This document shows, piece after piece, positions 15,607 to 57,724 of a stretch of DNA of 64,000 bases (position 1 is the first letter of the stretch; every line of letters starts with the position of its first letter). The translations under genes were made by a program, and so were the position numbers. The stretch lies in the IMG/VR virus record IMGVR_UViG_3300042350_004528, positions 124,001-188,000 of that record; one strand, 5' to 3'. Below the pieces are notes generated by a model, which was given only the letters and a program-made list of their open reading frames with translations, was not told the origin of the DNA and made no database searches.

Positions 15607-18600
15607 TTATGAAATTCTATGTCCATAGAAATAAGTCATTACTGTACCACCACCACCAACAATATCAGCATCACAACTTGCGAAGGTTCCTACGATAAGT
15701 CCATTACCAGTCCCGCGAACCCTAACCTCAATTTCTTGATCTGTTCCACCATCATTATAAACTACCGTATCAATATTCACTGTTTCAGGACAATCTGTTG
15801 AGGTTATATCGTAAATTGCAACTTTTAAATATGTTGCTGTTGTTACGTTGTAAAATGCAACGCTTGTATATGCCGTCCAATTGGCAAAACCAATTTGAGC
15901 TTGAATTTCCCAGGTTTCACCTGGTTGTATAACAAATCTATAACCATTAGCCGAAACATAACCTGTTACATCGTATTGTGTGGTATCAAATTGAACTGTT
16001 GTATCAGTATTTGCGGTTAGGTTTAAATCACTCTGTGCTAATGTAATTTGGAAATAATTACCGCCACCAGCTGATACACCTGATGTACCTGAAGATCCAG
16101 CTGCGCCCGTACCACCCGAAACACCTGATGTACCAGAAGAACCAGAAGTCCCTCTCGCCCCTGATGTACCAGAAGTTCCTGATGTACCAGAAGTTCCTGA
16201 AGAACCAGAAGTCCCTCTCGCCCCTGATGTACCAGAAGTTCCTGAAGAACCAGAAGTCCCTCTCGCCCCTGATGTACCAGAAGTTCCAGAAGTTCCTGAT
16301 GTACCACCACCACCACCACCACCTATGGTCGATACGGCTCGTAATGTTAAAAAATTATTTGTGACGTTGTCTACGGCTAAAACGTGAGTTGCGGCATTAT
16401 CAATTGGCGCAGTGACCTCAGTTTTACCAGCATTACCCCCCGAAAGTATGGTTTTAAACCCACTTACCGCCCCTACGTACACCCAATCAGTTAAAGCTGT
16501 AAGATCATTCCATACGAGATATGGGGCTTTTTGGCTTATAGCTGTCGCAGTTACGTTACTTAAATCAAAACTTAATGTCACATCACTGACTAATTGGCCG
16601 CCACCCGCCAAACCAACTCCCGAAATAACCGAAACATACGTTCCAGCGGTACCGAGATTACCTGAAATTCCTGATGTGCCAGATGTTCCTGATGTGCCAG
16701 ATGTTCCAGATGTTCCTGAAGAACCAGATGTTCCTGAAGAACCTGAGCCCGTTGAAGTTCCACTTGTTCCGATAGCACTATTACCAGATGTACCAGCGCT
16801 ACCAGAAGTTCCTGATGTTCCGCTTAATGCTGATATACCATTTAGTCCACTCACACCAGAAGTTCCTGTCGTACCAGAAGTTCCTGAAGAACCTGATGTT
16901 CCAGATGTGGCACTCACACCTGAAGTACCTGACGTTCCATTTCTTCCCGATGTTCCGAAGGAACCAGAAGTTCCTGATGTAGCACCTGTACTCACACCTG
17001 AAGTACCTGACGTTCCATTTCTTCCTGAAGTTCCGAAGGAACCAGAAGTACCCGATGTAACACCCGTACTCACACCTGATGTTCCAGATGTACCATTTCT
17101 TCCCGATGTTCCGAAAGCACCTGAAGTACCCGATGTAACACCCGTACTCACACCTGAAGTACCTGATGTACCATCTCTTCCTGAAGTTCCCGATGTTCCT
17201 GAAGAACCATTTGTTCCTGATGTTGCAGAAACACCACTTGTGCCAGCAGTTCCGTTTATTCCTGAAGTTCCAGAAGTTCCTGAAGAACCTGATGTTCCAG
17301 ATGTGGCACTCACACCTGATGTTCCAGATGTACCATCTCTTCCTGAAGTTCCGAACGCACCAGAAGTTCCCGATGTAACACCTGTACTCACACCTGAAGT
17401 ACCTGACGTTCCATTTCTTCCTGAAGTTCCGAAAGCACCTGAAGTTCCTGATGTAACACCCGTACTCACACCTGAAGTACCTGACGTTCCATTTCTTCCT
17501 GAAGTTCCGAAAGCACCTGAAGTACCTGATGTAACACCCGTACTCACACCTGAAGTACCTGATGTACCATCTCTTCCTGAAGTTCCGAAGGAACCAGAAG
17601 TTCCCGATGTCGCGGATATTCCCGATGTACCAGCAGTTCCGTTTATTCCTGAAGTTCCAGCTGTTCCTGAAGAACCTGATGTTCCCGATGTGGCACTCAC
17701 ACCTGAAGTACCTGACGTTCCATTTCTTCCTGAGGTTCCTGAAGAACCTGAAGTTCCTGATGTAGCAGAAACACCACTTGTTCCTGATGTTCCTGAAGAA
17801 CCAGAAGTACCGCTTGTCGCAGATACTCCCGATGTTCCAGCTGTACCATTTATTCCTGAGGTTCCCGAAGAACCTGATGTTCCTGAAGTTGCACTTATTC
17901 CTGAAGTTCCAGCTGTTCCTGAAGAACCAGAAGTACCTGATGTAGCGGATACTCCCGAAGTTCCAGCAGTTCCATTTCTACCCGAGGTTCCCGAAGATCC
18001 GCTTGTACCTGATGTTGCTGATACACCTGAAGTACCAGAAGTTCCCGATGATCCATTAGTTCCACTTGTTGCAGAAACACCCGAAGTTCCAGCAGTTCCA
18101 TTTATTCCTGATGTTCCTGACGATCCACTTGTACCTGAAGTACCTGATGTTCCGCTCGAACCAGAAGTACCTGATGTAGCGGATACTCCCGATGTTCCAG
18201 CAGTTCCATTTCTACCCGCAGTTCCACTTGAACCAGAAGTACCTGATGTTGCAGATACCCCACTTGTACCTGAAGTCCCGCTTGAACCAGCAGTTCCGCT
18301 TGTTGCTGATATACCTGAAGTTCCAGCAGTTCCATTTATACCTGAAGTTCCTGACGATCCGCTTGTACCAGAAGTACCAGCAGTTCCACTTGAACCAGAA
18401 GTTCCTGATGTTGCTGATATACCTGAAGTCCCAGCAGTTCCATTTCTACCCGAGGTTCCTGAAGAACCTGATGTTCCTGATGTTGCAGATACACCAGAAG
18501 TACCTGATGTTCCACTCGAACCAGAAGTTCCTGATGTAGCGGATACTCCCGATGTTCCAGCGGTTCCATTTATACCTGAAGTTCCTGACGATCCACTTGT

Positions 18601-21600
18601 ACCAGAAGTACCAGCAGTTCCACTTGAACCAGAAGTTCCTGATGTTGCTGATATACCTGAAGTACCAGCAGTTCCATTTCTACCCGAGGTTCCTGAAGAA
18701 CCTGATGTTCCACTTGTTGCTGATATACCTGATGTTCCACTTGAACCACTTGTTCCTGATGTTGCAGAAACACCACTTGTACCAGCAGTTCCATTTCTTC
18801 CTGAAGTACCTGAAGATCCACTTGTACCTGATGTTGCGGAAACGCCTGAGGTTCCCGAGGTTCCCGAAGAACCTGATGTACCACTTGTTGCAGAAACACC
18901 TGAAGTTCCGTTTATTCCTGATGTTCCCGATGAACCACTCGTTCCAGCAGTTCCAGAAGTTCCCGAAGATCCACTTGTACCTGATGTTGCAGATACACCT
19001 GAAGTTCCAGCAGTTCCATTTCTACCTGAAGTTCCACTTGAACCTGATGTACCTGATGTGGCAGATACTCCACTTGTTCCTGAAGAACCTGATGTTCCAC
19101 TTGTTGCTGATACACCTGAAGTTCCAGCAGTTCCATTTATTCCTGAGGTTCCTGAAGATCCACTTGTACCTGATGTCGCAGATACCCCACTTGTTCCTGA
19201 TGTACCTGAAGAACCAGAAGTCCCCGATGTCGCAGATACACCTGAAGTTCCAGCAGTTCCATTTCTTCCCGATGTACCTGAAGAACCAGAAGTTCCTGAT
19301 GTTGCAGATACCCCACTTGTTCCTGATGTTCCACTTGAACCTGATGTTCCACTTGTTGCTGATATCCCAGAGGTACCATTTATTCCCGATGTTCCACTTG
19401 AACCTGATGTTCCACTTGTTGCTGATATCCCAGAGGTACCAGCAGTTCCTGAAGAACCACTTGTACCGCTTGTCGCAGACACACCACTTGTTCCAGCAGT
19501 TCCGTTTCTACCTGAAGTTCCTGAAGAACCAGAAGTTCCTGATGTTGCAGATATCCCTGATGTTCCCGAGGTTCCTGAAGAACCTGATGTTCCACTTGTT
19601 GCTGATATCCCAGAGGTACCAGCAGTTCCGTTTATTCCAGAGGTTCCTGAAGAACCTGATGTTCCTGATGTTGCTGACACACCACTTGTTCCCGCAGTTC
19701 CCGAAGATCCACTTGTACCTGATGTTGCAGAAACACCTGAGGTTCCAGCAGTTCCATTTCTACCCGCAGTTCCCGAAGAACCCGATGTTCCTGATGTTGC
19801 AGATATCCCTGATGTTCCCGAGGTTCCTGAAGAACCAGAAGTTCCTGATGTTGCAGAAACACCTGAAGTACCAGCAGTTCCATTTATACCTGAAGTTCCT
19901 GACGATCCACTTGTACCAGAAGTACCAGCAGTTCCTGAAGAACCTGATGTACCACTTGTTGCAGAAACACCTGAGGTTCCAGCAGTTCCATTTCTACCCG
20001 AGGTTCCTGAAGAACCTGATGTACCTGATGTTGCAGACACTCCTGATGTACCAGCAGTTCCCGAAGAACCTGATGTTCCTGATGTCGCAGATACACCTGA
20101 AGTTCCAGCAGTTCCATTTATTCCTGAAGTTCCTGAAGAACCATTTGTTCCTGATGTCGCAGAAACACCACTTGTCCCTGATGTACCTGAAGAACCAGAA
20201 GTTCCTGATGTTGCTGATATTCCTGATGTACCAGCGGTTCCATTTCTACCTGAAGTACCTGAAGAACCACTTGTTCCTGATGTTGCTGAAACTCCCGAAG
20301 TACCAGAAGTTCCAGAGGAACCTGATGTTCCTGAAGTTGCACTTATTCCTGAAGTACCAGCCGTACCGTTTATTCCCGAAGTACCTGACGATCCACTTGT
20401 ACCAGAAGTACCTGATGTTCCGCTCGAACCAGAAGTTCCTGATGTTGCGGATACACCTGAAGTTCCAGCAGTTCCGTTTATTCCAGAGGTTCCTGAAGAA
20501 CCTGATGTTCCTGATGTTGCAGATATTCCACTTGTACCAGCTGTACCTGAAGAACCTGAAGTTCCGCTTGTTGCTGATATCCCTGAAGTCCCAGCAGTTC
20601 CATTTCTACCTGAGGTACCACTTGAACCACTCGTTCCCGATGTAGCGGATACACCACTTGTCCCTGATGTACCTGAAGAACCAGCAGTTCCACTTGTTGC
20701 AGAAACACCTGAAGTTCCAGCAGTTCCATTTATTCCTGAAGTTCCTGAAGAACCTGAAGTTCCTGAAGTTGCACTTATTCCTGAAGTTCCAGCTGTTCCT
20801 GAAGAACCTGATGTTCCTGATGTGGCACTTATTCCTGAAGTTCCAGCAGTTCCATTTCTACCCGAGGTTCCTGAAGATCCAGAAGTACCTGATGTTGCAG
20901 AAACACCTGATGTACCTGAAGTACCTGAAGAACCACTTGTTCCCGATGTTGCAGAAACACCTGATGTACCAGCGGTTCCATTTATTCCTGATGTTCCCGA
21001 TGAACCAGAAGTTCCGCTTGTTGCGGATGTACCTGATGTTCCAGCAGTACCACTTGAACCAGAAGTACCTGATGTTGCAGAAACACCTGATGTACCTGAG
21101 GTTCCATTTCTACCAGCTGTTCCTGAAGAACCCGATGTCCCACTTGTAGCGGATACACCACTTGTTCCAGCTGTACCTGAAGAACCTGATGTACCTGATG
21201 TCGCAGATATACCTGATGTTCCAGCAGTTCCATTTCTACCAGCTGTTCCTGAAGAACCCGATGTCCCACTTGTAGCGGATACTCCACTTGTTCCTGATGT
21301 TCCTGAAGAACCAGAAGTTCCTGATGTTGCTGATGCACCTGAAGTTCCAGCGGTACCATTTATTCCTGAAGTTCCCGATGATCCATTTGTACCAGCCGTA
21401 CCAGAAGTGCCAGAAGATCCACTTGTTCCGCTTGTTGCGGATATACCTGATGTTCCAGCAGTTCCATTTATACCTGAAGTTCCAGAAGAACCAGAAGTTC
21501 CGCTTGTTGCAGATATTCCTGATGTTCCAGCGGTACCATTAATACCTGATGTACCAGCTGTTCCTGAAGAACCAGAAGTTCCGCTTGTTGCAGATATTCC

Positions 21601-24600
21601 TGAAGTCCCAGCAGTTCCGTTTCTACCAGAAGTACCTGAAGAACCAGAAGTACCTGATGTTGCAGAAACACCTGATGTTCCCGAGGTTCCTGAAGAACCA
21701 GAAGTACCTGATGTGGCGGATACACCTGAAGTCCCAGCAGTTCCATTTATTCCTGATGTTCCACTTGAACCTGATGTACCTGATGTCGCAGAAACACCAC
21801 TTGTTCCTGATGTTCCACTTGAACCAGAAGTACCCGATGTCGCAGACACACCTGATGTTGCTGATACCCCCGATGTACCTGATGTTCCGCTCGATCCACT
21901 TGTTCCTGATGTTGCAGAAACACCACTTGTTCCAGCTGTACCTGAAGAACCTGAAGAACCTGATGTTCCTGATGTTGCAGATATTCCACTTGTACCAGCA
22001 GTTCCATTTCTACCTGAGGTACCACTTGAACCACTCGTTCCCGATGTTGCGGATACTCCACTTGTTCCTGATGTTCCCGAAGAACCAGAAGTTCCTGATG
22101 TTGCTGAAACACCTGATGTACCAGAAGTTCCATTTATTCCTGAAGTTCCCGATGAACCACTTGTACCAGCAGTACCTGAGGTTCCTGAAGAACCAGAAGT
22201 ACCTGATGTTGCGGATATTCCTGAAGTTCCAGCAGTTCCATTTATTCCAGCTGTTCCTGAAGAACCATTTGTTCCTGATGTCGCAGATACACCTGAAGTC
22301 CCCGCAGTTCCACTTGAACCAGAAGTTCCCGATGTTGCTGATATCCCTGAAGTTCCAGCAGTTCCGTTTCTTCCTGAGGTTCCTGAAGAGCCCGATGTTC
22401 CTGATGTAGCAGAAACACCACTTGTTCCCGCAGTTCCCGAAGAACCCGATGTTCCTGAGGTTGCTGAAACACCCGATGTTCCAGCTGTACCATTTATTCC
22501 AGATGTTCCTGAAGAACCTGATGTTCCTGAAGTTGCTGATACACCCGATGTTCCACTTGTTCCCGAAGAACCTGATGTTCCTGAGGTTGCTGAAACACCC
22601 GATGTTCCAGCTGTACCATTTATTCCTGAGGTTCCTGAAGAACCTGATGTCCCACTTGTAGCGGACACACCACTTGTTCCCGCAGTTCCTGAAGAACCAG
22701 AAGTACCTGATGTTGCTGAAACACCCGATGTTCCAGCTGTACCATTTATTCCTGAAGTTCCAGAGGAACCTGATGTTCCTGAAGTTGCTGATATTCCTGA
22801 AGTACCAGCTGTTCCTGAAGAACCAGAAGTTCCGCTTGTTGCGGATATTCCTGAAGTTCCAGCAGTTCCGTTTCTTCCTGAGGTTCCTGAAGAACCAGAA
22901 GTACCTGATGTTGCCGATACTCCCGATGTTCCTGAGGTTCCTGAAGAACCTGATGTTCCTGATGTAGCAGAAACACCTGATGTACCAGCTGTACCATTTA
23001 TCCCCGAAGTTCCCGCAGTTCCCGAAGAACCTGATGTTCCTGATGTTGCAGAAACACCACTTGTTCCAGCTGTACCTGAAGAACCTGATGTTCCACTTGT
23101 TGCCGATATTCCTGATGTACCAGAAGTTCCATTTCTTCCTGAAGTACCTGAAGAACCACTTGTTCCTGATGTTGCTGAAACACCACTTGTTCCAGCTGTA
23201 CCTGAAGAACCAGATGTACCTGATGTTGCGGAAACACCTGATGTTCCAGCGGTTCCGTTTATTCCTGATGTTCCACTTGAACCAGAAGTACCTGATGTTG
23301 CAGATACCCCACTTGTACCTGAAGTCCCGCTTGAACCAGCAGTTCCGCTTGTTGCTGATATACCTGAAGTTCCAGCAGTTCCATTTCTACCTGATGTTCC
23401 ACTTGAACCCGATGTACCTGATGTTGCAGATACTCCTGAAGTTCCAGCAGTACCACTTGAACCTGATGTACCTGATGTGGCAGACACACCACTTGTACCA
23501 GCAGTTCCATTTCTTCCTGATGTTCCACTTGAACCTGATGTTCCTGATGTTGCAGACACTCCTGATGTACCTGAGGTTCCTGAAGATCCACTTGTACCTG
23601 ATGTTGCTGATATCCCCGAAGTTCCAGCAGTTCCATTTATTCCTGATGTACCTGAGGTTCCACTTGAACCCGATGTTGCAGACACACCTGATGTGCCTGA
23701 GGTTCCCGAAGAACCTGATGTACCTGATGTCGCAGATATACCTGATGTTCCAGCAGTTCCATTTATTCCTGAAGTACCTGAAGATCCGTTTGTACCTGAT
23801 GTTGCGGAAACACCTGAGGTTCCCGAGGTTCCCGAAGAACCCGATGTTCCTGATGTGGCAGACACACCACTTGTACCAGCAGTTCCATTTCTTCCCGATG
23901 TACCTGAAGTTCCGCTTGAACCAGCAGTACCGCTTGTCGCAGATACTCCACTTGTACCAGCAGTTCCGTTTATTCCTGATGTTCCAGCAGTACCACTTGA
24001 ACCTGATGTACCTGATGTTGCAGACACTCCTGATGTTCCAGCAGTACCATTTATTCCTGAAGTACCCGAAGATCCGTTTGTACCAGCAGTCCCTGAAGTC
24101 CCCGAAGATCCACTTGTACCTGATGTCGCTGATGCCCCTGAAGTTCCAGCGGTTCCGTTTATTCCTGATGTTCCACTTGAACCAGATGTTCCACTTGTTG
24201 CCGATATCCCTGATGTACCAGCGGTTCCATTTCTACCTGAAGTACCACTTGAACCTGATGTACCTGATGTTGCAGAAACACCTGATGTACCTGAAGTTCC
24301 ATTTATCCCTGATGTGCCTGAAGTACCGCTTGAACCTGATGTTCCTGATGTTGCAGACACTCCTGAAGTTCCTGATGTTCCCGAAGAACCAGAAGTTCCT
24401 GATGTTGCAGACACTCCTGAAGTTCCTGATGTTCCATTTATTCCTGATGTTCCACTTGAACCTGATGTACCTGATGTGGCAGATACTCCTGAAGTTCCCG
24501 AAGTACCTGAAGAACCAGATGTACCTGATGTTGCGGAAACACCTGATGTTCCAGCGGTTCCGTTTATTCCTGATGTTCCACTTGAACCAGATGTTCCTGA

Positions 24601-27600
24601 TGTGGCGGATACACCCGAAGTTCCCGAAGTACCTGAAGAACCAGAAGTTCCTGATGTCGCAGATACCCCACTTGTACCAGCGGTTCCATTTATTCCTGAT
24701 GTTCCACTTGAACCTGATGTTCCTGATGTGGCAGATACTCCACTTGTACCAGAGGTACCACTTGAACCCGATGTACCTGATGTTGCAGATACTCCACTTG
24801 TACCAGCAGTTCCGTTTATTCCTGAAGTACCTGAAGATCCACTTGTACCTGATGTTGCTGATATACCTGAAGTTCCAGCAGTTCCATTTCTACCAGCTGT
24901 ACCTGAAGATCCTGATGTTCCACTTGTCGCAGATACCCCACTTGTACCAGCGGTTCCATTTATTCCTGATGTTCCAGAAGAACCTGATGTTCCTGATGTG
25001 GCAGATACACCCGAAGTTCCTGAAGTTCCACTTGAACCCGATGTTCCTGATGTGGCAGACACACCACTTGTACCAGCAGTTCCGTTTATTCCTGATGTTC
25101 CAGCAGTACCACTTGAACCTGATGTACCTGATGTTGCAGACACACCACTTGTTCCAGCAGTTCCATTTCTACCAGCGGTTCCACTTGAACCATTTGTTCC
25201 AGATGTTGCAGATACCCCTGAAGTTCCTGATGTTCCGTTTATTCCCGAAGTTCCTGAAGAACCTGATGTTCCTGATGTTGCGGAAACACCTGAAGTTCCC
25301 GATGTTCCATTTCTACCTGATGTTCCCGAAGAACCTGAGGTTCCTGAAGAACCATTTGTTCCCGATGTTCCACTTATTGCTGATATACCATTTAATCCAT
25401 CAATACCCGATGTACCAGTTGAACCACTTGTTCCTGATGTTGCAGATACACCTGATGTTCCAGCACTCCCACTTCTACCTGATGTTCCCGAAGAACCTGA
25501 GGTTCCTGAAGAACCATTTGTTCCCGATGTTCCACTTATTGCTGATATACCATTTAATCCATCAATACCCGATGTACCAGTTGAACCAGAAGTTCCACTT
25601 GTCGCAGACACTCCTGATGTTCCAGCAGTACCATTTCTTCCTGAGGTTCCCGAAGAACCTGAGGTTCCACTTGTTGCAGATACTCCACTTGAACCTGATG
25701 TACCTGATGTCGCAGATACTCCCGATGTACCAGAGGTACCCGATGTTCCTGAAGAACCAGAAGTTCCAGATGTTGCAGAAACACCTGATGTTCCCGATGT
25801 TCCTGAAGAACCTGATGTTCCTGATGTGGCAGACACACCACTTGTACCAGCAGTTCCATTTATTCCTGATGTTCCCGAAGAACCAGATGTACCTGATGTT
25901 GCCGATATACCTGAAGTTCCAGCGGTACCATTTATTCCAGATGTTCCATTGGAACCACTTGTTCCCGATGTCGCAGACACACCTGAAGTCCCAGCGGTTC
26001 CATTTCTCCCCGATGTTCCACTTGAACCTGATGTTCCACTTGTAGCGGATACTCCCGATGTACCAGCAGTACCGTTTATTCCTGAAGTACCTGAAGAACC
26101 ATTTGTTCCAGATGTGGCAGATACTCCACTTGAACCAGCAGTACCGCTTGTCGCAGATACTCCACTTGTTCCCGAGGTTCCTGAAGACCCAGACGTTCCT
26201 GATGTTGCAGATACACCTGATGTTCCAGCACTCCCACTTCTACCTGATGTTCCCGAAGAACCTGATGTTCCTGATGTCGCAGACACACCTGAAGTTCCAG
26301 AGGTTCCGTTTATTCCCGATGTACCTGAAGAACCAGATGTCCCTGATGTTCCACTTATCGCTGATGTACCAGCAGTACCGTTTATTCCTGAAGTACCTGA
26401 AGAACCATTTGTTCCAGATGTGGCAGACACACCTGAAGTTCCTGATGTTCCATTTATTCCTGATGTACCTGATGAACCACTTGTACCAGCAGTTCCACTT
26501 ATCGCTGATGTACCAGCAGTACCATTTATTCCCGAAGTTCCTGATGACCCAGAAGTTCCTGATGTTGCCGATATTCCCGAAGTTCCTGATGTTCCATTTA
26601 TTCCTGATGTACCTGATGAACCACTTGTTCCTGATGTCGCAGACACACCACTTGTACCAGCAGTTCCATTTGAACCTGATGTTCCTGATGTTGCTGATAT
26701 CCCAGAAGTACCTGATATCCCAGAAGTACCTGATGAACCACTTGTACCAGCAGTTCCATTTCTTCCTGAGGTTCCGCTTGAGCCAGAAGTTCCTGAAGTT
26801 CCACTCTCACCTGAAGTTCCCGAAGAACCTGAAGTTCCTGAAGAACCACTTGTACCGCTTGAACCAGAAGTTCCCGAAGAACCTGAAGTATTCGATTCAC
26901 CTGATGTACCAGCACCACCTGATGTTCCAGCAGTACCACCTGTTCCCGAGGTTCCAGCCTGGGATGTACTTGTTCCAGATGTACCAGCACCACCTGATGT
27001 TCCAGAAGTACCACCTGTTCCCGAGGTTCCAGCCTGGGATGTACTTGTTCCAGATGTACCAGCACCACCTGATGTTCCAGCAGTACCACCTGTTCCCGAG
27101 GTTCCACTTATTGCTGATATACCATTTAATCCATCAATACCCGATGTACCAGTTGAACCAGAAGTTCCTGATGTTGCTGATATCCCCGAAGTTCCAGCAG
27201 TTCCATTTCTACCTGATGTTCCACTTGAACCAGAAGTTCCTGATGTTGCTGATATCCCTGATGTACCAGAGGTACCCGATGTTCCTGAAGAACCATTTGT
27301 TCCGCTTGTCGCCGATACCCCTGATGTTCCCGAAGAACCCGAAGTTCCAGCAGTTCCTGAAGAACCATTTGTTCCCGATGTCGCAGATATCCCACTTGTT
27401 CCCGATGTTCCATTTATTCCTGATGTACCTGAAGATCCACTTGAACCTGATGTACCTGATGTGGCAGATACACCTGATGTTCCAGCGGTTCCATTTATTC
27501 CTGAAGTCCCCGAAGATCCACTTGTTCCAGCAGTACCTGATGTACCCGAAGAACCCGATGTTCCCGAAGATCCGCTAGATCCTGAAGTCCCCGAACTTCC

Positions 27601-30600
27601 GCTTGAGCCAGAAGTACCTGATGTTCCTGAACTCCCCGAACTTCCGCTTGAGCCAGAAGTACCTGATGTTCCTGATGTTGCGGAAACACCTGATGTACCA
27701 GCGGTTCCATTTCTTCCTGAAGTTCCGCTTGAACCAGAAGTTCCAGATGTTGCAGAAACACCTGAAGTTCCATTTAATCCTGATGTTCCCGAAGAACCTG
27801 ATGTTCCCGAAGAACCTGATGTTCCCGAAGAACCTGATGTACCAGTAGTTCCTGATGTACCTGAAGAACCTGAGGTTCCAGAAGAACCTGATGTTCCCGA
27901 AGAACCTGACGTACCTGATGTCGCAGATATTCCAGAAGTACCTGAAGTTCCAGATGATCCACTTTCACCCGATGTTCCCGAGGTTCCAGACGTTGCGGAA
28001 CCACCACTCTCACCCGCTAGTCCATTAACACCCGAAGTACCTGAAGAACCTGATGTTCCTGATGTTGCGGAAATGCCTGAAGTACCACTTGTACCGTTTG
28101 AGCCTGATGTTCCAGAAGTACCTGAAGACCCAGACGTTCCCGAAGAACCACTTGTCCCATTTGTACCCGATTCACCTGAAGTACCTGAAGACCCAGACGT
28201 TCCTGAAGTTCCATTTGTTCCTGATTTACCTGAAGACCCAGACGTTCCTGAAGTTCCACTTTCGCCAGAAGTTCCTGAAGTTCCATTTGTTCCTGATTCA
28301 CCTGATGTTCCCGAAGAACCACTTGTACCACTTGTTCCAGAAGAACCATTTGTACCATTTGTTCCAGATGTTCCACTTTCACCAGAAGTTCCCGAAGTTC
28401 CACTTTCACCCGAAGTTCCTGAAGAACCTGATGTACCTGATGTTGCAGATATCCCTGATGTTCCCGAAGAACCATTTGTACCACTTTCACCTGAACTTCC
28501 ACTTTCACCCGAACTTCCACTTGTGCCAGAAGTTCCCGAACTTCCACTTGAACCTGATGTACCTGAACTTCCACTTTCACCCGAAGTACCGTTTGTACCA
28601 CCCTCACCCGAAGTTCCATTTGTTCCTGAAGTTCCCGAAGTTCCACTTATTGCTGATATACCATTTAATCCATCAATACCCGATGTACCAGTTGAACCAG
28701 AAGTTCCTGATGTTGCTGATATACCTGAAGTTCCAGCAGTTCCATTTATTCCCGATGTTCCACTTGAACCAGAAGTTCCCGAAGAACCATTTGTACCAGA
28801 AGTTCCCGAAGAACCATTTGTACCACTTTCACCTGAAGTACCGTTTGTACCCGACTCACCAGATGTCCCTGATGTTCCCGATGTACCTGAAGAACCAGAT
28901 GTTCCTGATGTTCCTGAAGAACCATTTGTACCGCTCTCACCTGAACTTCCGCTTGAACCAGAAGAACCTGATGTTCCACTTGAGCCAGAAGAACCTGATG
29001 TTCCACTTGAGCCAAATGTTCCTGAGGTTCCAGAAGAACCATTTGTACCACTCTCACCTGAACTTCCACTCTCACCCGAAGTTCCTGAGGTTCCAGAAGA
29101 ACCTGATGTTCCACTTGAACCAGAAGTACCCGATGTTCCCGAAGAACCATTTGTACCACTTTCACCTGAAGTACCACTTTCACCCGAACTTCCACTTGAA
29201 CCAGAAGTACCTGATGTTCCTGAAGAACCAGAAGTACCTGATGTTCCTGAAGTACCGTTTGTACCACTTTCACCTGAAGTACCACTTTCACCCGATGTTC
29301 CTGAGGTTCCTGATGTACCTGAGGAACCACTTGTTCCAGAAGTTCCCGATGTTCCCGAAGAACCATTTGTACCACTTTCACCTGAAGTACCACTTTCACC
29401 TGAAGAACCCGAAGTTCCTGATGTACCTGAGGAACCACTTGTACCTGAAGTTCCAGATGATCCACTTTCACCCGATGTGCCTGAAGTTCCAGAAGTTGCG
29501 GAACCACCACTCTCACCCGCTAGTCCATTAACACCCGAAGTTCCTGAAGAACCAGAAGTTCCCGAAGAACCCGATGTCCCTGAAGTTGCTGAAAAACCTG
29601 AAGTACCGTTTGTACCCGACTCACCCGAAGTTCCCGAAGTTCCCGAAGAACCTGATGTTCCCGATGTTCCCGAAGAACCCGATGTCCCTGAAGTTGCTGA
29701 AAAACCTGAAGTACCATTTGTGCCCGACTCACCCGAAGTTCCTGAAGTTCCTGAAGAACCCGATGTCCCAGAAGTTCCTGAAGAACCCGATGTTCCTGAA
29801 GTTCCACTTTCACCTGAAGTACCGTTTGTACCCGACTCACCCGATGTTCCCGATGTTCCCGATGTACCTGAGGAACCACTTGTTCCCGAAGAACCCGAAG
29901 AACCTGATGTTCCTGAAGTTCCATTTGAACCTGATGTTCCTGAAGTTCCACTTTCACCCGAAGTTCCACTTGAGCCAGAAGTACCTGAGGAACCACTTGT
30001 TCCCGAAGAACCTGAAGAACCTGATGTACCTGATGTTCCTGAAGAACCATTTGTACCACTCTCACCTGAAGTACCACTCTCACCCGAAGAACCTGATGTT
30101 CCTGATGTTCCAGATGATCCACTTGTACCTGATGTTCCTGATGTTCCCGAAGAACCATTTGTCCCTGACTCACCTGAAGTACCGTTTGTTCCCGACTCAC
30201 CAGATGTCCCCGATGTCCCCGATGTACCTGATGAACCAGAAGTTCCCGAAGAACCAGATGTCCCTGATGTTCCGTTTGTTCCAGATTCACCATTTGTACC
30301 ATTTTCACCAGACGTTCCTGAAGTTCCTGAAGTTCCGCTTGTTCCTGATGTTCCTGAAGAACCAGAAGTACCTGATGTTCCGTTTGTTCCAGATTCACCA
30401 TTTGTACCATTTTCACCAGACGTTCCTGAAGTTCCTGAAGTTCCGCTTGTTCCTGATGTTCCTGAAGAACCAGACGTTCCTGAAGTTCCTGAAGTTCCGC
30501 TTGTTCCAGATTCACCATTTGTACCATTTTCACCCGAAGTTCCTGAAGAACCAGAAGTTCCCGAAGAACCAGAAGTTCCCGAAGTTCCACTTGTACCCGA

Positions 30601-31557
30601 TGTACCAGACGTACCGTTTGTCCCACTTTCACCCGATGTTCCTGATGTTCCTGTTGTCCCCGATGTTCCTGATGTGCCAGATGTGCTTGGCAACACCATA
30701 TATTTGTCAATTCTTTTTGCTACGATTATAACAGAGGGCGCCGCTGGATAATTAACCCCAGCCCCTAAAGCTGTTATTTGTACATGTTGATTTGTGGATA
30801 AAAATACAAACTCAACACAATCATTAGCTTGTAAATTAAATTGATATGCAACAAATGGTAATTGATATGCGCCATTTCCGCTTAATGTTATAGTTGATGT
30901 TGTCCTGGGCTCGTCATTGCCATTAATTCTTGCCCAAATTATAATATCAGTACCGTTTGCATTTGATGCGGCTTCAATTTGAGCTGAATATCCTATTTCA
31001 TAAACACCAGCATTATCTACGGTAATTTGTGAATTATTTTGTACACTAATGCCATTTGCAATTTCGGTTGTATTATATTCCCAAACGGTTGGTATACTTG
31101 AACCACTGACTACTTGTGTGGTTGAATCACTAAACGACCCATAATAATTATCTCCAGTCCACGAAGTACCAGATGAACCTGCTGTTCCCGAAGTACCAGT
31201 AGTTCCTGATGTACCTGAAGAACCAGAAGTTCCCGACTCACCAGATGTCCCCGATGTACCTGAGTAACCAGATGTTCCTGAGGTACTAGCGGCGGAATAT
31301 GTGAATTGACCCGTTAGCGGATCAAATGTTACGACATATTGCGGATTTAATTCTTGAGTTAATTCCTGATTAACCCAATTACTACCATTATAAACTAAAA
31401 TACTACCAGCTGTTGCGCCAGTTGTTATTATTACATCAGTTAGGTCATCCAGACCTAAGTTCTCAATTGCATTTTTTAGATTATCAAAATTCGCGTCAAG
31501 TTCGCCGAATGTTAAAGGTCTACCTAGTGCGCATCTTAAATATATTGTAACCGCCAT
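15607..31557 (-). CDS. Giant (5316 aa) Gly-X-Y Ser/Thr-rich collagen-like fibre protein with C1q/BclA-like globular domains
   Basis: N-terminus [21 protein letters not shown] resembles phage fibre attachment segments. Beta-sandwich at about aa 135-285 (YYGSF...[11 protein letters not shown]). About 4700 aa of period-3 [19 protein letters not shown]-terminal beta domain (TTVQFDT..YD...RFVIQ). TATTTAT upstream. Confidence 0.85.
16660..30690 (-). repeat. About 14-kb period-9-nt coding repeat (Gly-X-Y triplets) with synonymous variation
   Basis: Plus strand is built of units such as GTTCCTGAT, GTTCCTGAA, GAACCAGAA, GTACCTGAT. Confidence 0.95.
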
Positions 31558-55518: not shown

Positions 55519-55605
55519 AACCGCCGAAGGCGGTTGCGAAAAAATTTTTCTTTTAAATGAATTTTTCTTATTTTTGTGATATATATGTAAAATAATCAGA
55601 ATATA

Positions 55606-55788
55606 ATGTCGATGACCAACGAAGAAATAGCAGAAGAAATCTACCACCAAGCGTTTGATCTCGGATTTATCGATTTACTTCGTGAAAAGGTTGGTTATAT
55701 TTACAAAACAACGCATGTGAAAGATCACAGTGATGTTGTGCAAAAAGCATATAATTTATTGGTTACAGAAGGTTTGATACAACTATGA
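55606..55788 (+). CDS. Hypothetical protein (60 aa)
   Basis: Its TGA overlaps the ATG of the Asn leader peptide. Confidence 0.6.
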   Translation: MSMTNEEIAEEIYHQAFDLGFIDLLREKVGYIYKTTHVKDHSDVVQKAYNLLVTEGLIQL

Positions 55789-55864
55789 GATTCAGAAGAA
55801 AATACAATAACAATAATAATAAAATAGTAATTGGAAATCCTGTCATTTGACAGGATTTTTTTTT
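55785..55864 (+). promoter_or_regulatory. Putative Asn-sensing attenuator: leader peptide MRFRRKYNNNNNKIVIGNPVI* (55785-55850) overlapping a terminator (55835-55864)
   Basis: Five consecutive Asn codons plus a sixth in the stem. Hairpin AAATCCTGTC-ATTT-GACAGGATTT followed by a T run, 28 nt before the AsnRS-like gene. Confidence 0.7.
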
Positions 55865-55892
55865 GCGCCAAAAATTAAACAAAAAAAAACAA

Positions 55893-56708
55893 ATGAAAAA
55901 CACAGAAACTTACAATGAACTCGTGCAGAAGATGCGCAAATTCTTTCTTGAAAGAGGATTCAAGGAAGTGCCAACACAATCAAGATTATCAATTCTCGCG
56001 GCTTGTGAGAACCCACACTCGGTTAAAACGTTCGAGTATGGTGGTTTGATCTGGCCGTTGCCACAGACTGGACAGATGTGGCTTGAGTATGAGTTGTTAA
56101 AGAATCCAGAATGGAATGGCGTATTTTGCGTATCAACATCGTACAGAGAAGAAAAGAACCCAATCCCAGGAAGGCATGAGCTTATCTTCCCAATGTTTGA
56201 GTTTGAGTCAAAGGGAACCATGGAGGATTTAATCAAAATGGAAGGCGACCTTTTGGCTTATCTTGGATTTGGTGATGAGATGGTTCAAGTTAAATACGAT
56301 GATGTGTGTGAGGAATACGGTGGGGTACCAATTCTTGAGGATGAGCATGAATCCAGAATGTGGAATGAAAAGGGTAATGTTGTTTCATTACAACACTTCC
56401 CAATCAGAACAAATCCATTCTGGAACATGAAACACAATAACGATGGGATTTTCAACAAGGTTGATGTGATTCTTTACGGACAGGAAACAATTGGATCCGC
56501 CGAGAGAAGCTGCGATGTTGAGAAGATGAGAGAAATGTTTTATGCTATTGAGAACGGTGCGTATTGCGCCAAGTTGTTCGAGTTATTCGGAAAAGAAAGG
56601 GTTGAGGCTGAGCTTGAGGAATTCTTGAAGCACAATTTCTTCCCAAGATATGGTGGTGGAATCGGGATGACCAGAATGGCCAGAGCGTATGAGTTATTAA
56701 AGAAATAA
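55893..56708 (+). CDS. Class II aaRS (Asn/Asp) catalytic-domain-only protein, probably an asparagine synthetase of the AsnRS-derived type
   Basis: Motif 1 (MRKFFLERGFKEV), motif 2 (SYREE...GRHELIFPMFEFE), ETIGSAER, motif 3 (GGGIGMTRM). No anticodon-binding domain. Confidence 0.8.
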   Translation: MKNTETYNELVQKMRKFFLERGFKEVPTQSRLSILAACENPHSVKTFEYGGLIWPLPQTGQMWLEYELLKNPEWNGVFCVSTSYREEKNPIPGRHELIFPMFEFESKGTMEDLIKMEGDLLAYLGFGDEMVQVKYDDVCEEYGGVPILEDEHESRMWNEKGNVVSLQHFPIRTNPFWNMKHNNDGIFNKVDVILYGQETIGSAERSCDVEKMREMFYAIENGAYCAKLFELFGKERVEAELEEFLKHNFFPRYGGGIGMTRMARAYELLKK

Positions 56709-56732
56709 AAAAAGGGGCGAAAGCCCCTTTTT
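56709..56732. terminator. Bidirectional terminator
   Basis: AAAAAGGGGC-GAAA-GCCCCTTTTT. Confidence 0.9.
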
Positions 56733-56742
56733 CTTTTTATCT

Positions 56743-57360
56743 TTAATCTTCTCCGCCCCAATCTTTATAATCACCAAATCTTTCGTTGTCTTCATAACCA
56801 GCGTTGTACGCTTCGATTTCTTCTGGTGTTAAATCGGTGATTCTCTCACCTTTGTAAGTTCCTTCTGGATACTTATGTGGGCTCTTGGGTCTTCTGTAAT
56901 ATGAATCGGCGTGACCGCGATCATATGGTGATCCGTGCGAATCATCGTATTTCTCACTTCTACCCTCCTGAAATATTTCAGTTCTTGGTTCATCGTAATG
57001 ATCCAACTTACCTATTGGGTAACGTTCGCCCGTCTCAGCGTTGTATTTAATGATTATCTTACCATCATCACTATCACCTATAAAATAATGTACATTATCA
57101 TCAGCTAAACTATAATATAATGGTCTGTCATAATCGTCAAACTCTCTTTGAACAACTTTTTCACCACTTGCGGATTCGATCGCGGCTTTTTCGAAATCGA
57201 AATCACTTTCCATTTCCTCGCCACCTCTTTCGGAATTATAGTTAAAAATATCATCGGTGTATGCATTTGGATTATCCACCTTTGATAGATCAATTTCTTC
57301 ATTAAGACCCATTATTTTGCGGAGTCTCGCAATTTCTTCATTTAATGTATTCTTTTTCAT
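56743..57360 (-). CDS. Tagged multi-module protein (LNEEIARLRKIMGL)
   Basis: Start MKKNTLNEE at 57360, TATTTAT at 57380-57386. C-terminal small domain HGSPYDRGHADSYY...AYNAGY. Confidence 0.75.
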   Translation of the reverse strand: MKKNTLNEEIARLRKIMGLNEEIDLSKVDNPNAYTDDIFNYNSERGGEEMESDFDFEKAAIESASGEKVVQREFDDYDRPLYYSLADDNVHYFIGDSDDGKIIIKYNAETGERYPIGKLDHYDEPRTEIFQEGRSEKYDDSHGSPYDRGHADSYYRRPKSPHKYPEGTYKGERITDLTPEEIEAYNAGYEDNERFGDYKDWGGED

Positions 57361-57415
57361 AGAAAAAAACAATTTATTGATAAATAGTTTGTCAAATCCA
57401 AAAATATTTATGAAC

Positions 57416-57724
57416 ATGGTAAAACTTTTTGAGAGAATACATATCCCATTGTGGATCGCAAAGGATATGTTCTGGATGTTGGGTCAGGGCGAACTCTCAT
57501 TGGCTTTCGCGATACCAACCATAATATTATCAACAATACTCATAACAGTAAAACAGGGGTCGGAAAGGTGGCTCGAGATGATGATGGCCTTTTGGTTATC
57601 AGCCAATACCTTATGGATGTCCCACGAGCTTTTTCATACGGACACAAAAGAAATTGCATTAACCTGTTTTTTATTTGGCATTTTAACAATTCCAATCTAT
57701 TTATTAAAGATAAAAGAAGAATAA
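57416..57724 (+). CDS. Small multi-pass membrane protein
   Basis: HIPLWIAKDMFWM..., about four hydrophobic segments. Start at 57410 or 57416. Confidence 0.65.
   Translation: MVKLFERIHIPLWIAKDMFWMLGQGELSLAFAIPTIILSTILITVKQGSERWLEMMMAFWLSANTLWMSHELFHTDTKEIALTCFLFGILTIPIYLLKIKEE

Follow-up and report, generated by a model that had tools for sequence, protein, structure and literature searches.

An asparagine-codon-rich leader and terminator upstream of an AsnRS-like gene in a phage of Bacteroidota

Introduction

Why should a lake-water phage of Bacteroidota place a tiny reading frame rich in asparagine codons, followed by a strong terminator, directly in front of a gene for a stand-alone AsnRS-like enzyme? 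The arrangement was first seen in a 64,000-nt stretch of IMG/VR record IMGVR_UViG_3300042350_004528 (positions 124,001 to 188,000; hereafter the window). A preliminary description, made from the sequence alone, likened it to an amino-acid biosynthetic attenuator and noted that archaeal-type asparagine synthetases are truncated AsnRS paralogues. It proposed that the phage senses the supply of Asn-tRNA to regulate its own Asn synthesis. As no classic antiterminator was apparent, it suggested that the ribosome might occlude the terminator stem directly, the direction of control being untested. The observation has proved to be correct, whereas the interpretation placed upon it is supported only in part. 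The layout is kept in related phages and is probably a ribosome-read switch, but one which likely works in the opposite direction to that first proposed.

Anatomy of the locus

All of the elements described here lie on the plus strand unless stated otherwise. The probable promoter of the transcription unit, which is inferred, is TATATATG (55580-55587), an element resembling the Bacteroidota -7 box 18 nt upstream of a 60-aa ORF. Boxes of the same kind (TAnnTTTG-like) lie 13-25 nt before several genes of the window. The 60-aa ORF (55606-55788) has no Pfam or PHROG match and is present only in three near-identical contigs (L001, L002 and L006 in the set of related loci). It provides about 180 nt of translated run-up before the leader ORF. 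Its TGA (55786-55788) overlaps the ATG (55785-55787) of the leader ORF as ATGA. The leader ORF (55785-55850) has 21 codons, encodes MRFRRKYNNNNNKIVIGNPVI and contains six Asn codons. Five of these, AAT AAC AAT AAT AAT, are consecutive (55806-55820), and the sixth, AAT, lies at 55836-55838 within the 5' arm of a hairpin.

The hairpin and its T run (55833-55864) resemble an intrinsic terminator. The 12-bp stem, which includes G-U pairs, is formed by a 5' arm at 55833-55844 and a 3' arm at 55849-55860, separated by an ATTT loop at 55845-55848, and nine T run from 55856 to 55864. The TGA of the leader (55848-55850) spans the last base of the loop and the first two bases of the 3' arm. Folding of 131 nt gave this stem as the dominant structure (-21.4 kcal/mol, z -3.1), the hairpin alone having a folding energy of -14.1 kcal/mol. 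A consensus terminator scan missed the hairpin, most likely because G-U extension of the stem uses up the first T of the run. In the window alone the hairpin could be the ordinary terminator of the 60-aa gene, since it lies 45 nt after that ORF, within the range of 4-45 nt seen for gene-end terminators in the window, but related phages argue otherwise. A 28-nt A-rich spacer (55865-55892) then leads to the ATG of the enzyme gene; it is inferred to be too short for a separate Bacteroidota promoter plus 5' UTR. A sigma-70-like TTGACA-17-AAAAAT overlaps the hairpin, but it is not conserved in relatives, whose spacers are 17-57 nt long and all A-rich.

The enzyme gene starts at the ATG at 55893, rather than at the TTG at 55863 given in the program-made ORF list, and ends at 56708. 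The unit is closed by a bidirectional terminator (56709-56732), and the next gene (56743-57417) is convergent. There are no tRNA genes in the window.

Conservation of the leader and terminator in related phages

The preliminary description had named the presence of Asn-run leaders upstream of homologues as a test of its proposal, and their absence as grounds for abandoning it. Related phages do keep the layout, albeit without the exact run. Of 62 distinct regions upstream of phage homologues (76-100% protein identity), 55 have a perfectly paired hairpin with T6 or more, using about ten different stem sequences. These counts rest on a per-sequence stem finder, as alignment of the hairpins with MAFFT and RNAalifold shifted the stems so that its pair counts understate the covariation. 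In 50-51 of the 55 there is an ATG ORF of 6-45 codons whose stop lies between 12 nt before the stem and its 3' end, compared with 11.7±3.2 (maximum 21) in dinucleotide shuffles. ORFs of 7-26 codons ending at the hairpin occupy the homologous positions in related phages. The leader ATG usually lies 4-9 nt after a Bacteroidota-type -7 box; of the 26 leader families that have such a box, 21 have it 0-9 nt before the ATG. Variants fit the same logic. In related loci L003, L009, L027 and L081 the ORF reads through the hairpin, while in L013, L016 and L065 a long upstream gene stops 9-13 nt before it. The layout of an orphan terminator with an abutting small ORF is nearly exclusive to this gene: among 217 terminator-like sites in 71 sources it occurs 52 times, 51 of them before the AsnRS-like gene.

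Asn codons are enriched in frame well beyond what base composition explains. In 22 leaders Asn makes up 23% of residues. AAY trinucleotides are distributed 75/27/13 over frames 0/1/2, whereas AAR trinucleotides are distributed 57/33/66. Shuffles which keep the frame open lead to an expectation of 40±5.6 Asn against 75 observed, and of NN in 3.6±1.7 leaders against 12 observed. In 28 leader families Asn makes up 21% of residues, compared with 6.8% in 694 control small ORFs from the same loci, and NN occurs in 13 of the 28 families against 5.8% of controls. The families share ancestry, so that these statistics overstate independence, and substitutions within families show only a weak coding bias, with 22/28/35 changes at codon positions 1/2/3 and 21 synonymous against 50 non-synonymous changes. 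The run of five Asn is particular to this phage; relatives carry 1-7 Asn codons, often as NN to NNNN. Asn runs of four or more occur at only three places in the six-frame translation of the window, and none of 742 control small intergenic ORFs has a run of five. A high demand for Asn in the phage proteome is not supported as a rationale, since Asn makes up 4.8-6.2% of long ORFs.

More distant homologues in marine phages, cyanophage P-SSM2, giant viruses and cellular Bacteroidota lack the cassette. The only DNA matches in the phage collection were to a stretch of 155-170 nt of the gene in cyanophages P-SSM2, P-SSM5 and P-SSM7. Copies in bacteria of the candidate phyla radiation (CPR) keep an orphan terminator but show no Asn enrichment (5.6%). 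In some CPR loci tRNA-Gln or tRNA-Glu genes, not tRNA-Asn, lie 1-3 kb downstream. A conserved GCCC following the T run was considered as a cassette-specific signal but rejected, because GGATTTTTTTTGCCC occurs as a terminator end in many unrelated phages and only 10 of 80 hits precede this gene.

The AsnRS-like enzyme

The product of the gene is a 271-aa protein which, as the preliminary description had claimed, is an AsnRS/AspRS-type class IIb aaRS catalytic core without an anticodon-binding domain. It matches PF00152, the class II (D/K/N) aminoacyl-tRNA synthetase catalytic domain, with 49.6 bits against a gathering cut-off of 25 (4e-13; residues 6-263 on profile positions 24-289 of 308), and PHROG 29758, of unknown function, at 2e-98. 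Motifs 2 and 3 are intact, and R85, E87, R94, H95, E103, E105 and R261 are invariant in the alignment examined. An AlphaFold2 model has a mean confidence (pLDDT) of 96.8, and its top Foldseek hits are AsnRS and AspRS, which confirms the fold.

AsnRS gives the best sequence and structure matches. The family keeps Q-x-x-Q-x-x-L-E (Q58, Q61, L64, E65) as AsnRS does, where AspRS has K-Q, together with the conserved Arg of the G-S-x-x-R block. The protein is not a canonical AsnRS, however. It aligns only to about residues 140-390 of AsnRS chains, lacks the N-terminal OB-fold domain which carries the main tRNA(Asn) identity readout, and scores 17.7 bits against a cut-off of 414 for NF003037. The archaeal asparagine synthetase A (AS-AR, the Pyrococcus abyssi AsnRS2 family; PDB 3P8T/3REX) is likewise a stand-alone class IIb core of about 270-290 aa without an anticodon-binding domain, and shares the fold over its whole length (TM-scores of 0.75/0.71 and 22% identity with 3REX). 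The phage enzyme is nevertheless not a member of that family, scoring 13.6 bits against a cut-off of 322 for NF005053. Against solved structures, the family profile matches AsnRS (1.6e-13) and AspRS (3.6e-13) better than AS-AR (8.7e-7). No AsnA family of the E. coli type (aspartate-ammonia ligase) appeared in Pfam or NCBIfam scans at E up to 0.1, and no AsnA chain appeared among the PDB profile hits at E up to 0.001. Membership of the EpmA/GenX family (EF-P lysine ligase) can also be set aside, with 21.4 bits against 286.9 for TIGR00462 and 23.7 against 264 for NF006828. The enzyme belongs to a large uncharacterised family which resembles AsnRS but falls into neither known asparagine synthetase A family. 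No activity is known, and the synthesis of Asn, which was not assayed, is only a hypothesis. A literature search brought up CmoY, a phage 'asparagine synthetase homologue', but this is a different kind of ATP-dependent amide ligase and is not relevant.

A proposed coupling model for the leader

In agreement with the preliminary description, no antiterminator was found. When leaders of 22 families were folded from the ATG to the loop without the 3' arm, any upstream pairing of the 5' arm gave 0 to about -2 kcal/mol, against -10 to -14.6 kcal/mol for the terminators, which carry T6-T9. Stop codons cluster at the stem and Asn codons lie upstream of it. The first base of the stop codon has a median position of -4 (IQR -10 to +5.5, range -14 to +14) from the first G/C of the stem. 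A ribosome at the stop codon reaches the G+C core of the stem in 97% of 58 leaders, while one held at the last Asn codon reaches it in 31% and one held at the first Asn codon in 2%.

The explanation tentatively favoured here is a ribosome-dependent transcription attenuator of the pyrBI/pyrE kind, lacking an antiterminator, which controls a promoter-less gene through a leader ORF loaded with Asn codons. In this view transcription starts upstream, before the 60-aa ORF in this phage and 4-9 nt before the leader ATG in most relatives, so that the leader mRNA would be nearly leaderless. RNA polymerase would then meet a strong hairpin and U-tract about 30-60 nt before the enzyme gene. If the leading ribosome keeps pace and reaches the stop codon, at or inside the stem, it would cover the 5' arm, prevent the hairpin from forming and allow polymerase to read into the gene. 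If decoding of the Asn codons is slow, the ribosome would lag 10-35 nt upstream, the hairpin would form and transcription would end. Expression would therefore rise with Asn-tRNA(Asn) supply and with translational capacity in general, the reverse of a biosynthetic attenuator. There is a precedent in E. coli, where a terminator is almost fully repressed when the stop codon is about 8-17 bp away and fully active beyond 30 bp, and where translational pausing restores termination (PMC4824070).

What the analysis itself demonstrates is the conserved anatomy, its specificity for this gene, the in-frame Asn enrichment, the absence of an alternative structure and the geometry. That the hairpin terminates transcription in the host, that the ORF is translated, where transcription starts, the direction of control and the chemistry of the enzyme are all inferred. 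The enzyme has an AsnRS-like pocket signature and may synthesise Asn or perform another reaction through an Asn or Asp adenylate. There is no experimental or transcript-level evidence; metatranscriptome contigs yielded only scattered fragments of the gene or its relatives, too sparse to show ends, with nothing on the leader. A number of points also sit uneasily with the model. Leaders of 30-80 nt give a ribosome little time to catch polymerase unless polymerase pauses (PMC4824070), and no pause signal was identified in the leaders, which are A/U-rich throughout, although no pause prediction was made. In some families, where the stop lies 10-14 nt before the G+C core, a terminating ribosome covers only the weak A-U base of the stem. 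Furthermore, the predicted direction, with less enzyme when Asn-tRNA is scarce, is odd if the enzyme makes asparagine.

Alternative explanations

The strongest rival, though an unlikely one, is that the hairpin is a constitutive, partly leaky terminator or insulator, or the target of a phage antitermination factor for timing, and that the small ORF, translated or not, has no sensing role. Its Asn richness would then have another cause, such as an unstructured A-rich start region or a small peptide with its own function. The normal distance of the hairpin behind a gene in the window, the common occurrence of GGATTTTTTTTGCCC-type terminator ends in unrelated phages, the fast evolution of the peptide sequences and the CPR terminators without Asn enrichment are all in keeping with this view. 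By contrast, the ORF and the position of its stop are kept across leaders of very different sequence and length, far above shuffles, Asn codons but not Lys codons are frame-specific, and the layout is nearly exclusive to this gene. Leaders of 7-26 rapidly diverging residues are, moreover, unlikely to be functional peptides.

Less likely still is the model first proposed, in which a ribosome stalled on the Asn codons under starvation physically occludes the 5' arm, so that the terminator fails and an Asn-supplying enzyme is induced. The sixth Asn codon of this phage lies inside the 5' arm, and in at least two other leader families, with endings such as NNPIIY and NNPF before the stop, Asn codons sit at the base of the stem. 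This direction would make sense for an Asn-producing or tRNA(Asn)-charging enzyme, and E. coli pheST is an aaRS operon under a Phe-codon leader. However, a starved ribosome would stop at the first Asn codons, a median of 32 nt upstream of the stem core, and the geometry argues against such occlusion as the general mechanism. In the window the run of five ends 12 nt before the stem, so that a ribosome held there leaves the CCTGTC/GACAGG core free, and there is no antiterminator to transmit a distant stall.

A structured RNA switch, whether riboswitch-like, tRNA-sensing or protein-bound, with an incidental ORF, is very unlikely. Orphan terminators do precede homologues in many CPR genomes, some with conserved nucleotide blocks. 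Yet the phage leaders are A/U-rich with essentially no predicted structure apart from the terminator, and leader sequences are not conserved at the nucleotide level between families. No cis-regulatory leader of Rfam 15 was found in the window region, searched in E-value mode, where the best match was Phe_leader at 25.3 bits against a gathering score of 55, nor upstream of 20 cellular homologues. Pure coincidence, a chance ORF in the A/T-rich spacer between a gene and a terminator at an ordinary distance in a window of 36.6% G+C, is made very unlikely by the control small ORFs, only 2-6% of which have NN, and by the recurrence of the architecture in dozens of related phages.

Relation to known attenuators

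In the pyrBI and pyrE (rph-pyrE) attenuators of E. coli, ribosome-polymerase coupling controls an intrinsic terminator. As here, a translated ORF ends just before the hairpin or runs through it, no antiterminator is needed and a close-following ribosome blocks hairpin formation. The stop-to-stem distances of the phage leaders fall in the range where E. coli terminators are repressed (PMC4824070). In the E. coli systems, however, the sensed variable is polymerase speed (UTP/GTP) at U-rich pause sites, whereas the variable suggested by the phage sequence is ribosome speed at Asn codons. The phage element also differs in its Bacteroidota host and in that most leaders appear nearly leaderless.

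With the classical leader-peptide attenuators (trp, his, phe, leu, thr, and pheST for an aaRS) the cassette shares a short leader ORF enriched in codons of one amino acid, followed by an intrinsic terminator before a gene which plausibly belongs to the metabolism of that amino acid. The antiterminator and anti-antiterminator structures which define those systems are absent, the control codons are not positioned to mask any stem segment, and the predicted response, which was not measured here, is inverted.

Implications

Leader-peptide attenuation is a textbook mechanism, but it is known mainly from Proteobacteria and a few other phyla. No case for asparagine, for phage genes or for Bacteroidota was found in Rfam 15 or in literature searches. 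It is possible, though no more than tentatively, that the cassette represents a previously undescribed class of amino-acid-sensing attenuator in phages of Bacteroidota, a nearly leaderless, Asn-codon-rich ORF ending on an intrinsic terminator, which switches the gene on only while Asn-tRNA-dependent translation keeps pace with RNA polymerase. A conserved attenuator that has lost, or never had, the antiterminator and relies only on where the ribosome stops would be a minimal form of the device. It would also be direct genomic evidence for functional transcription-translation coupling and leaderless initiation in Bacteroidota, a phylum that lacks Shine-Dalgarno-led initiation. Finally, the leader gives the first functional lead, a link to asparagine, for a new and very abundant family of stand-alone AsnRS-like enzymes, with over 8000 members in the protein search and 678 clusters at 50% identity. 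This family is spread over phages, giant-virus MAGs, CPR bacteria and DPANN archaea, and is currently annotated only as 'tRNA ligase', 'amino acid--tRNA ligase-related protein' or, wrongly, 'transposase'. Were the switch to operate as envisaged, the chemistry of these enzymes would thereby be tied to asparagine.

The leader region and its setting

The sequence of the region bears out the preliminary description. An ORF at 55785-55850 (+) encodes MRFRRKYNNNNNKIVIGNPVI*, its ATG overlapping the TGA of a 60-aa ORF (55606-55788) as ATGA. Five consecutive Asn codons lie at 55806-55820 and a sixth at 55836-55838. The hairpin is made up of a 5' arm at 55833-55844, an ATTT loop at 55845-55848 and a 3' arm at 55849-55860, with nine T at 55856-55864, and the TGA at 55848-55850 spans the junction of loop and 3' arm. 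RNA folding of 131 nt gives this 12-bp stem as the dominant structure (-21.4 kcal/mol, z = -3.1), and the stem-loop alone has a predicted energy of -14.1 kcal/mol. A simple terminator scan missed it, most likely because G-U extension of the stem uses up part of the T run. A sigma-70-like match at 55847-55875 (+), TTGACA-17 nt-AAAAAT (10 of 12), overlaps the 3' arm and the spacer; it is not conserved in relatives and is probably irrelevant in a Bacteroidota host. The downstream gene starts at ATG 55893 and ends at 56708 (271 aa), and is followed by a bidirectional terminator at 56709-56732 and then by a convergent gene.

The window is that of a phage, encoding a major head protein, a virion structural protein, a helicase and an ATP-dependent protease. 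Over this locus it is identical to an IMG/VR contig of 76.7 kb, and it is found in lake-water metagenomes. TAnnTTTG-type boxes 13-25 nt before several genes point to a Bacteroidota host, and a relative at 81% protein identity sits in a Fluviicola MAG. The window also holds, at 15607-31557 (-), a single 5316-aa ORF made almost entirely of collagen triple-helix (G-X-Y) repeats (Pfam PF01391, E about 1e-245 for each half), a very large collagen-like protein for a phage, whose repetitiveness also opens a 4779-aa ORF on the opposite strand.

Taken alone, the window makes only a weak case for more than chance. Gene-end terminators here lie 4-45 nt behind their genes, and the hairpin in question lies 45 nt behind the 60-aa ORF. 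Elsewhere in the window, four terminator-like hairpins occur within 800 nt (62674, 63015, 63262 and 63442, minus strand), three of which have nearly the same stem (GAAAGGGGAA-GAAA-TTCCCCTTTT) and the same trailing sequence (TTTTATGTTAAAACT), so that these represent a repeated unit rather than independent terminators. Runs of four or more Asn, however, occur at only three places in all six frames of the 64 kb, the only run longer than that of the leader being one of eight Asn at 14468 (-), inside a 671-aa ORF (13413-15428) with no PHROG match. None of 742 control small intergenic ORFs (8-26 codons, from the window and related loci) has a run of five.

Conservation of the cassette in related phages

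The protein has more than 8000 homologues in the protein search and at least 596 matching stretches in viral contigs. Sixty-two distinct upstream regions were examined, drawn from the 80 best phage loci plus the window. Of these, 55 have a perfectly paired hairpin with 3 or more G-C pairs and T6 or more, located 17-57 nt before the gene. About ten different stem sequences are used, so pairing is kept while the sequence changes. In 50-51 of the 55 there is an ATG ORF of 6-45 codons whose stop falls between 12 nt before the stem and the end of the 3' arm, whereas dinucleotide-preserving shuffles of the 90 nt before the hairpin give 11.7±3.2 (maximum 21 of 300). A second sampling, from a relative at 61% identity, added 28 new upstream regions with the same layout.

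In 26 of 28 leader families a -7-type box lies just upstream, and in 21 of those 26 it ends 0-9 nt before the ATG. This suggests nearly leaderless transcripts, although it is an inference, since no transcription start was mapped. The spacer between the T run and the gene is short and A-rich, leaving little room for a separate promoter. The arrangement is also largely specific to this gene. Among 217 terminator-like sites in 71 sources (about 0.5 Mb), an orphan terminator with an abutting small ORF and a gene start within 110 nt occurs 52 times, and 51 of these are in front of this gene.

Asparagine codons in the leaders

The preliminary description had made its reading depend on whether homologues in phages and Bacteroidota also carry Asn-run leaders; in the related phages an excess of Asn was found. 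In 22 representative leaders Asn is the commonest residue (75 of 323, 23%). AAY trinucleotides fall 75/27/13 in frames 0/1/2 of the ORF, whilst AAR trinucleotides show no such preference (57/33/66). Shuffles that keep dinucleotides and an open frame expect 40±5.6 Asn (maximum 56 of 1000), and expect NN in 3.6±1.7 leaders against 12 observed. In 28 families Asn accounts for 21% of residues (86 of 410), against 6.8% in 694 control small ORFs from the same loci. Every family has at least one Asn, 24 have two or more, and 13 have NN, against 5.8% of controls. These families share ancestry, however, and the tests therefore overstate independence. The leader peptides otherwise diverge fast, with only a weak third-position bias (22/28/35 changes at codon positions 1/2/3, and 21 synonymous against 50 non-synonymous), as fits leader peptides whose sequence matters little.

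Limits of the cassette

Copies of the gene in marine phages, giant viruses and cyanophage P-SSM2 have no leader or terminator, and cellular Bacteroidota copies have none either. By contrast, 42 of 78 cellular loci, mostly CPR, have an orphan terminator-like hairpin with a T run within 150 nt upstream, at about 20-150 nt from the gene and often divergent from the neighbouring gene, and 30 of these loci have a small ATG ORF ending at or running through it. There Asn is only 5.6% of residues, and the same layout occurs 11 times elsewhere in those loci. One group of these cellular loci (L099, L107, L117, L133 and L142) shares a conserved block of the form ATGCATCGA...TCGATACAAAGC, whilst another (L100, L140 and L153) shares AATGCATAA...ATGCA flanking the hairpin. 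There is no Rfam match. This may be an undescribed leader. A tRNA-Gln gene lies 1-3 kb downstream of the homologue in six CPR loci (L082, L090, L104, L109, L121 and L155), with tRNA-Glu in L107 and L117, which probably reflects synteny among related genomes.

Proposed mechanism of control

No alternative structure can compete with the terminator. When the leaders are folded without the 3' arm, the 5' arm is unpaired or paired at 0 to about -2 kcal/mol, confirming the earlier remark that there is no classic antiterminator. Geometry then decides between two ribosome models. In 58 distinct leaders, measured relative to the first G/C of the stem, the first base of the stop codon has a median position of -4 (IQR -10 to +5.5, range -14 to +14), the first Asn codon a median of -32.5 (IQR -38 to -27) and the last Asn codon a median of -20 (IQR -23 to -11). 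Taking the ribosome to cover about 12 nt 3' of the first A-site base, in line with footprints and toeprints, a ribosome at the stop codon reaches the stem core in 97% of leaders, one held at the last Asn codon in 31%, and one held at the first Asn codon in 2%. In this window a ribosome held on the run of five would reach only about 55818-55830, leaving the CCTGTC/GACAGG core free, whilst a ribosome at the TGA would cover the whole stem. Variant loci among the related phages agree with this picture. In L003, L009, L027 and L081 the ORF reads through the hairpin, and in L009 it runs up to the gene's ATG, whilst in L013, L016 and L065 a long upstream gene stops 9-13 nt before the stem.

This is the arrangement of the E. 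coli pyrBI and pyrE attenuators. It also matches experiments in which a terminator is almost fully repressed when the stop codon lies 8-17 bp away and regains about 0.9 efficiency beyond 30 bp, with translational pausing restoring termination (PMC4824070). It is therefore proposed that translation to the stop prevents termination, and that slow decoding of Asn codons uncouples the ribosome and lets the terminator act, such that expression would follow Asn-tRNA supply positively. The short, nearly leaderless leaders of relatives would need polymerase pausing, which was not examined. In this phage, the 60-aa ORF supplies about 180 nt of translated run-up, easing the catch-up problem described for terminators in the first 100 nt of a coding region (PMC4824070).

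The interpretation in the preliminary description, that the phage senses Asn-tRNA supply to regulate its own Asn synthesis, possibly through direct occlusion of the stem by the ribosome, is only partly supported. Occlusion remains possible for this window and for a few families that have Asn codons at the stem base, but it cannot be general.

The AsnRS-like enzyme

The 271-aa protein matches Pfam PF00152 (4e-13) and PHROG 29758, of unknown function (2e-98), whilst NCBIfam gives only sub-threshold hits: EpmA at 2.5e-5, AspRS/AsnRS at about 1e-3 and archaeal AsnA at 0.037. The AlphaFold2 model is confident (mean pLDDT 96.8), and in a Foldseek comparison AsnRS and AspRS catalytic domains rank first. 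The archaeal asparagine synthetase A (3REX, 3REU) is the only match covering a whole target of the same size (TM-scores 0.75/0.71, 22% identity). Against solved structures, a 49-sequence family profile scores AsnRS at 1.6e-13, archaeal AspRS at 3.6e-13, AS-AR at 8.7e-7 and EpmA at 7.5e-5, and does not hit E. coli-type AsnA. Motifs 2 and 3 and the Mg/ATP residues are invariant. The family has Q-x-x-Q-x-x-L-E where AsnRS has the same and AspRS has K-Q; that Lys binds the Asp side chain in AspRS, and that Glu helps to read the Asn amide in AsnRS. The signature is a lead and does not amount to a test of function. The protein is therefore an AsnRS-like stand-alone core, but a member of neither known asparagine synthetase A family; whether it makes Asn, as the preliminary description inferred, charges something with Asn, or does something else is open.

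Homologues at 55-63% identity occur in Saccharibacteria and other CPR bacteria, DPANN archaea, Dependentiae, Rhabdochlamydia, Bdellovibrio-like bacteria, Weeksellaceae and Chitinophagaceae, including on chromosome-sized contigs. Members at about 50-58% identity are encoded, without the leader cassette, on giant-virus MAGs (L168, L169 and L172, IMG/VR GVMAG contigs). A protein atlas adds nothing functional. Public names are 'amino acid--tRNA ligase-related protein', 'tRNA ligase' and 'transposase', the last of which, given to members of the family in several NCBI records (proteins P0278, P0291, P0294 and P0314), looks like a propagated misannotation.

Significance of the leader

No Rfam family corresponds to this leader, and literature searches found neither an Asn-codon leader nor a described function for the phage enzyme. 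The feature is judged to be real and conserved. It is read as leader-ORF attenuation of the coupling type, which is of a known kind, with an amino-acid codon bias. That this is a gene-specific device of leader ORF and terminator can be held with good confidence. That the Asn codons are its sensing element is somewhat more likely than not, and the same holds for the proposed direction of control if both of these points are granted; the full statement is put forward only tentatively. Attenuation may be a recurrent way of controlling this gene family, but the Asn signature belongs to the freshwater Bacteroidota-phage clade.
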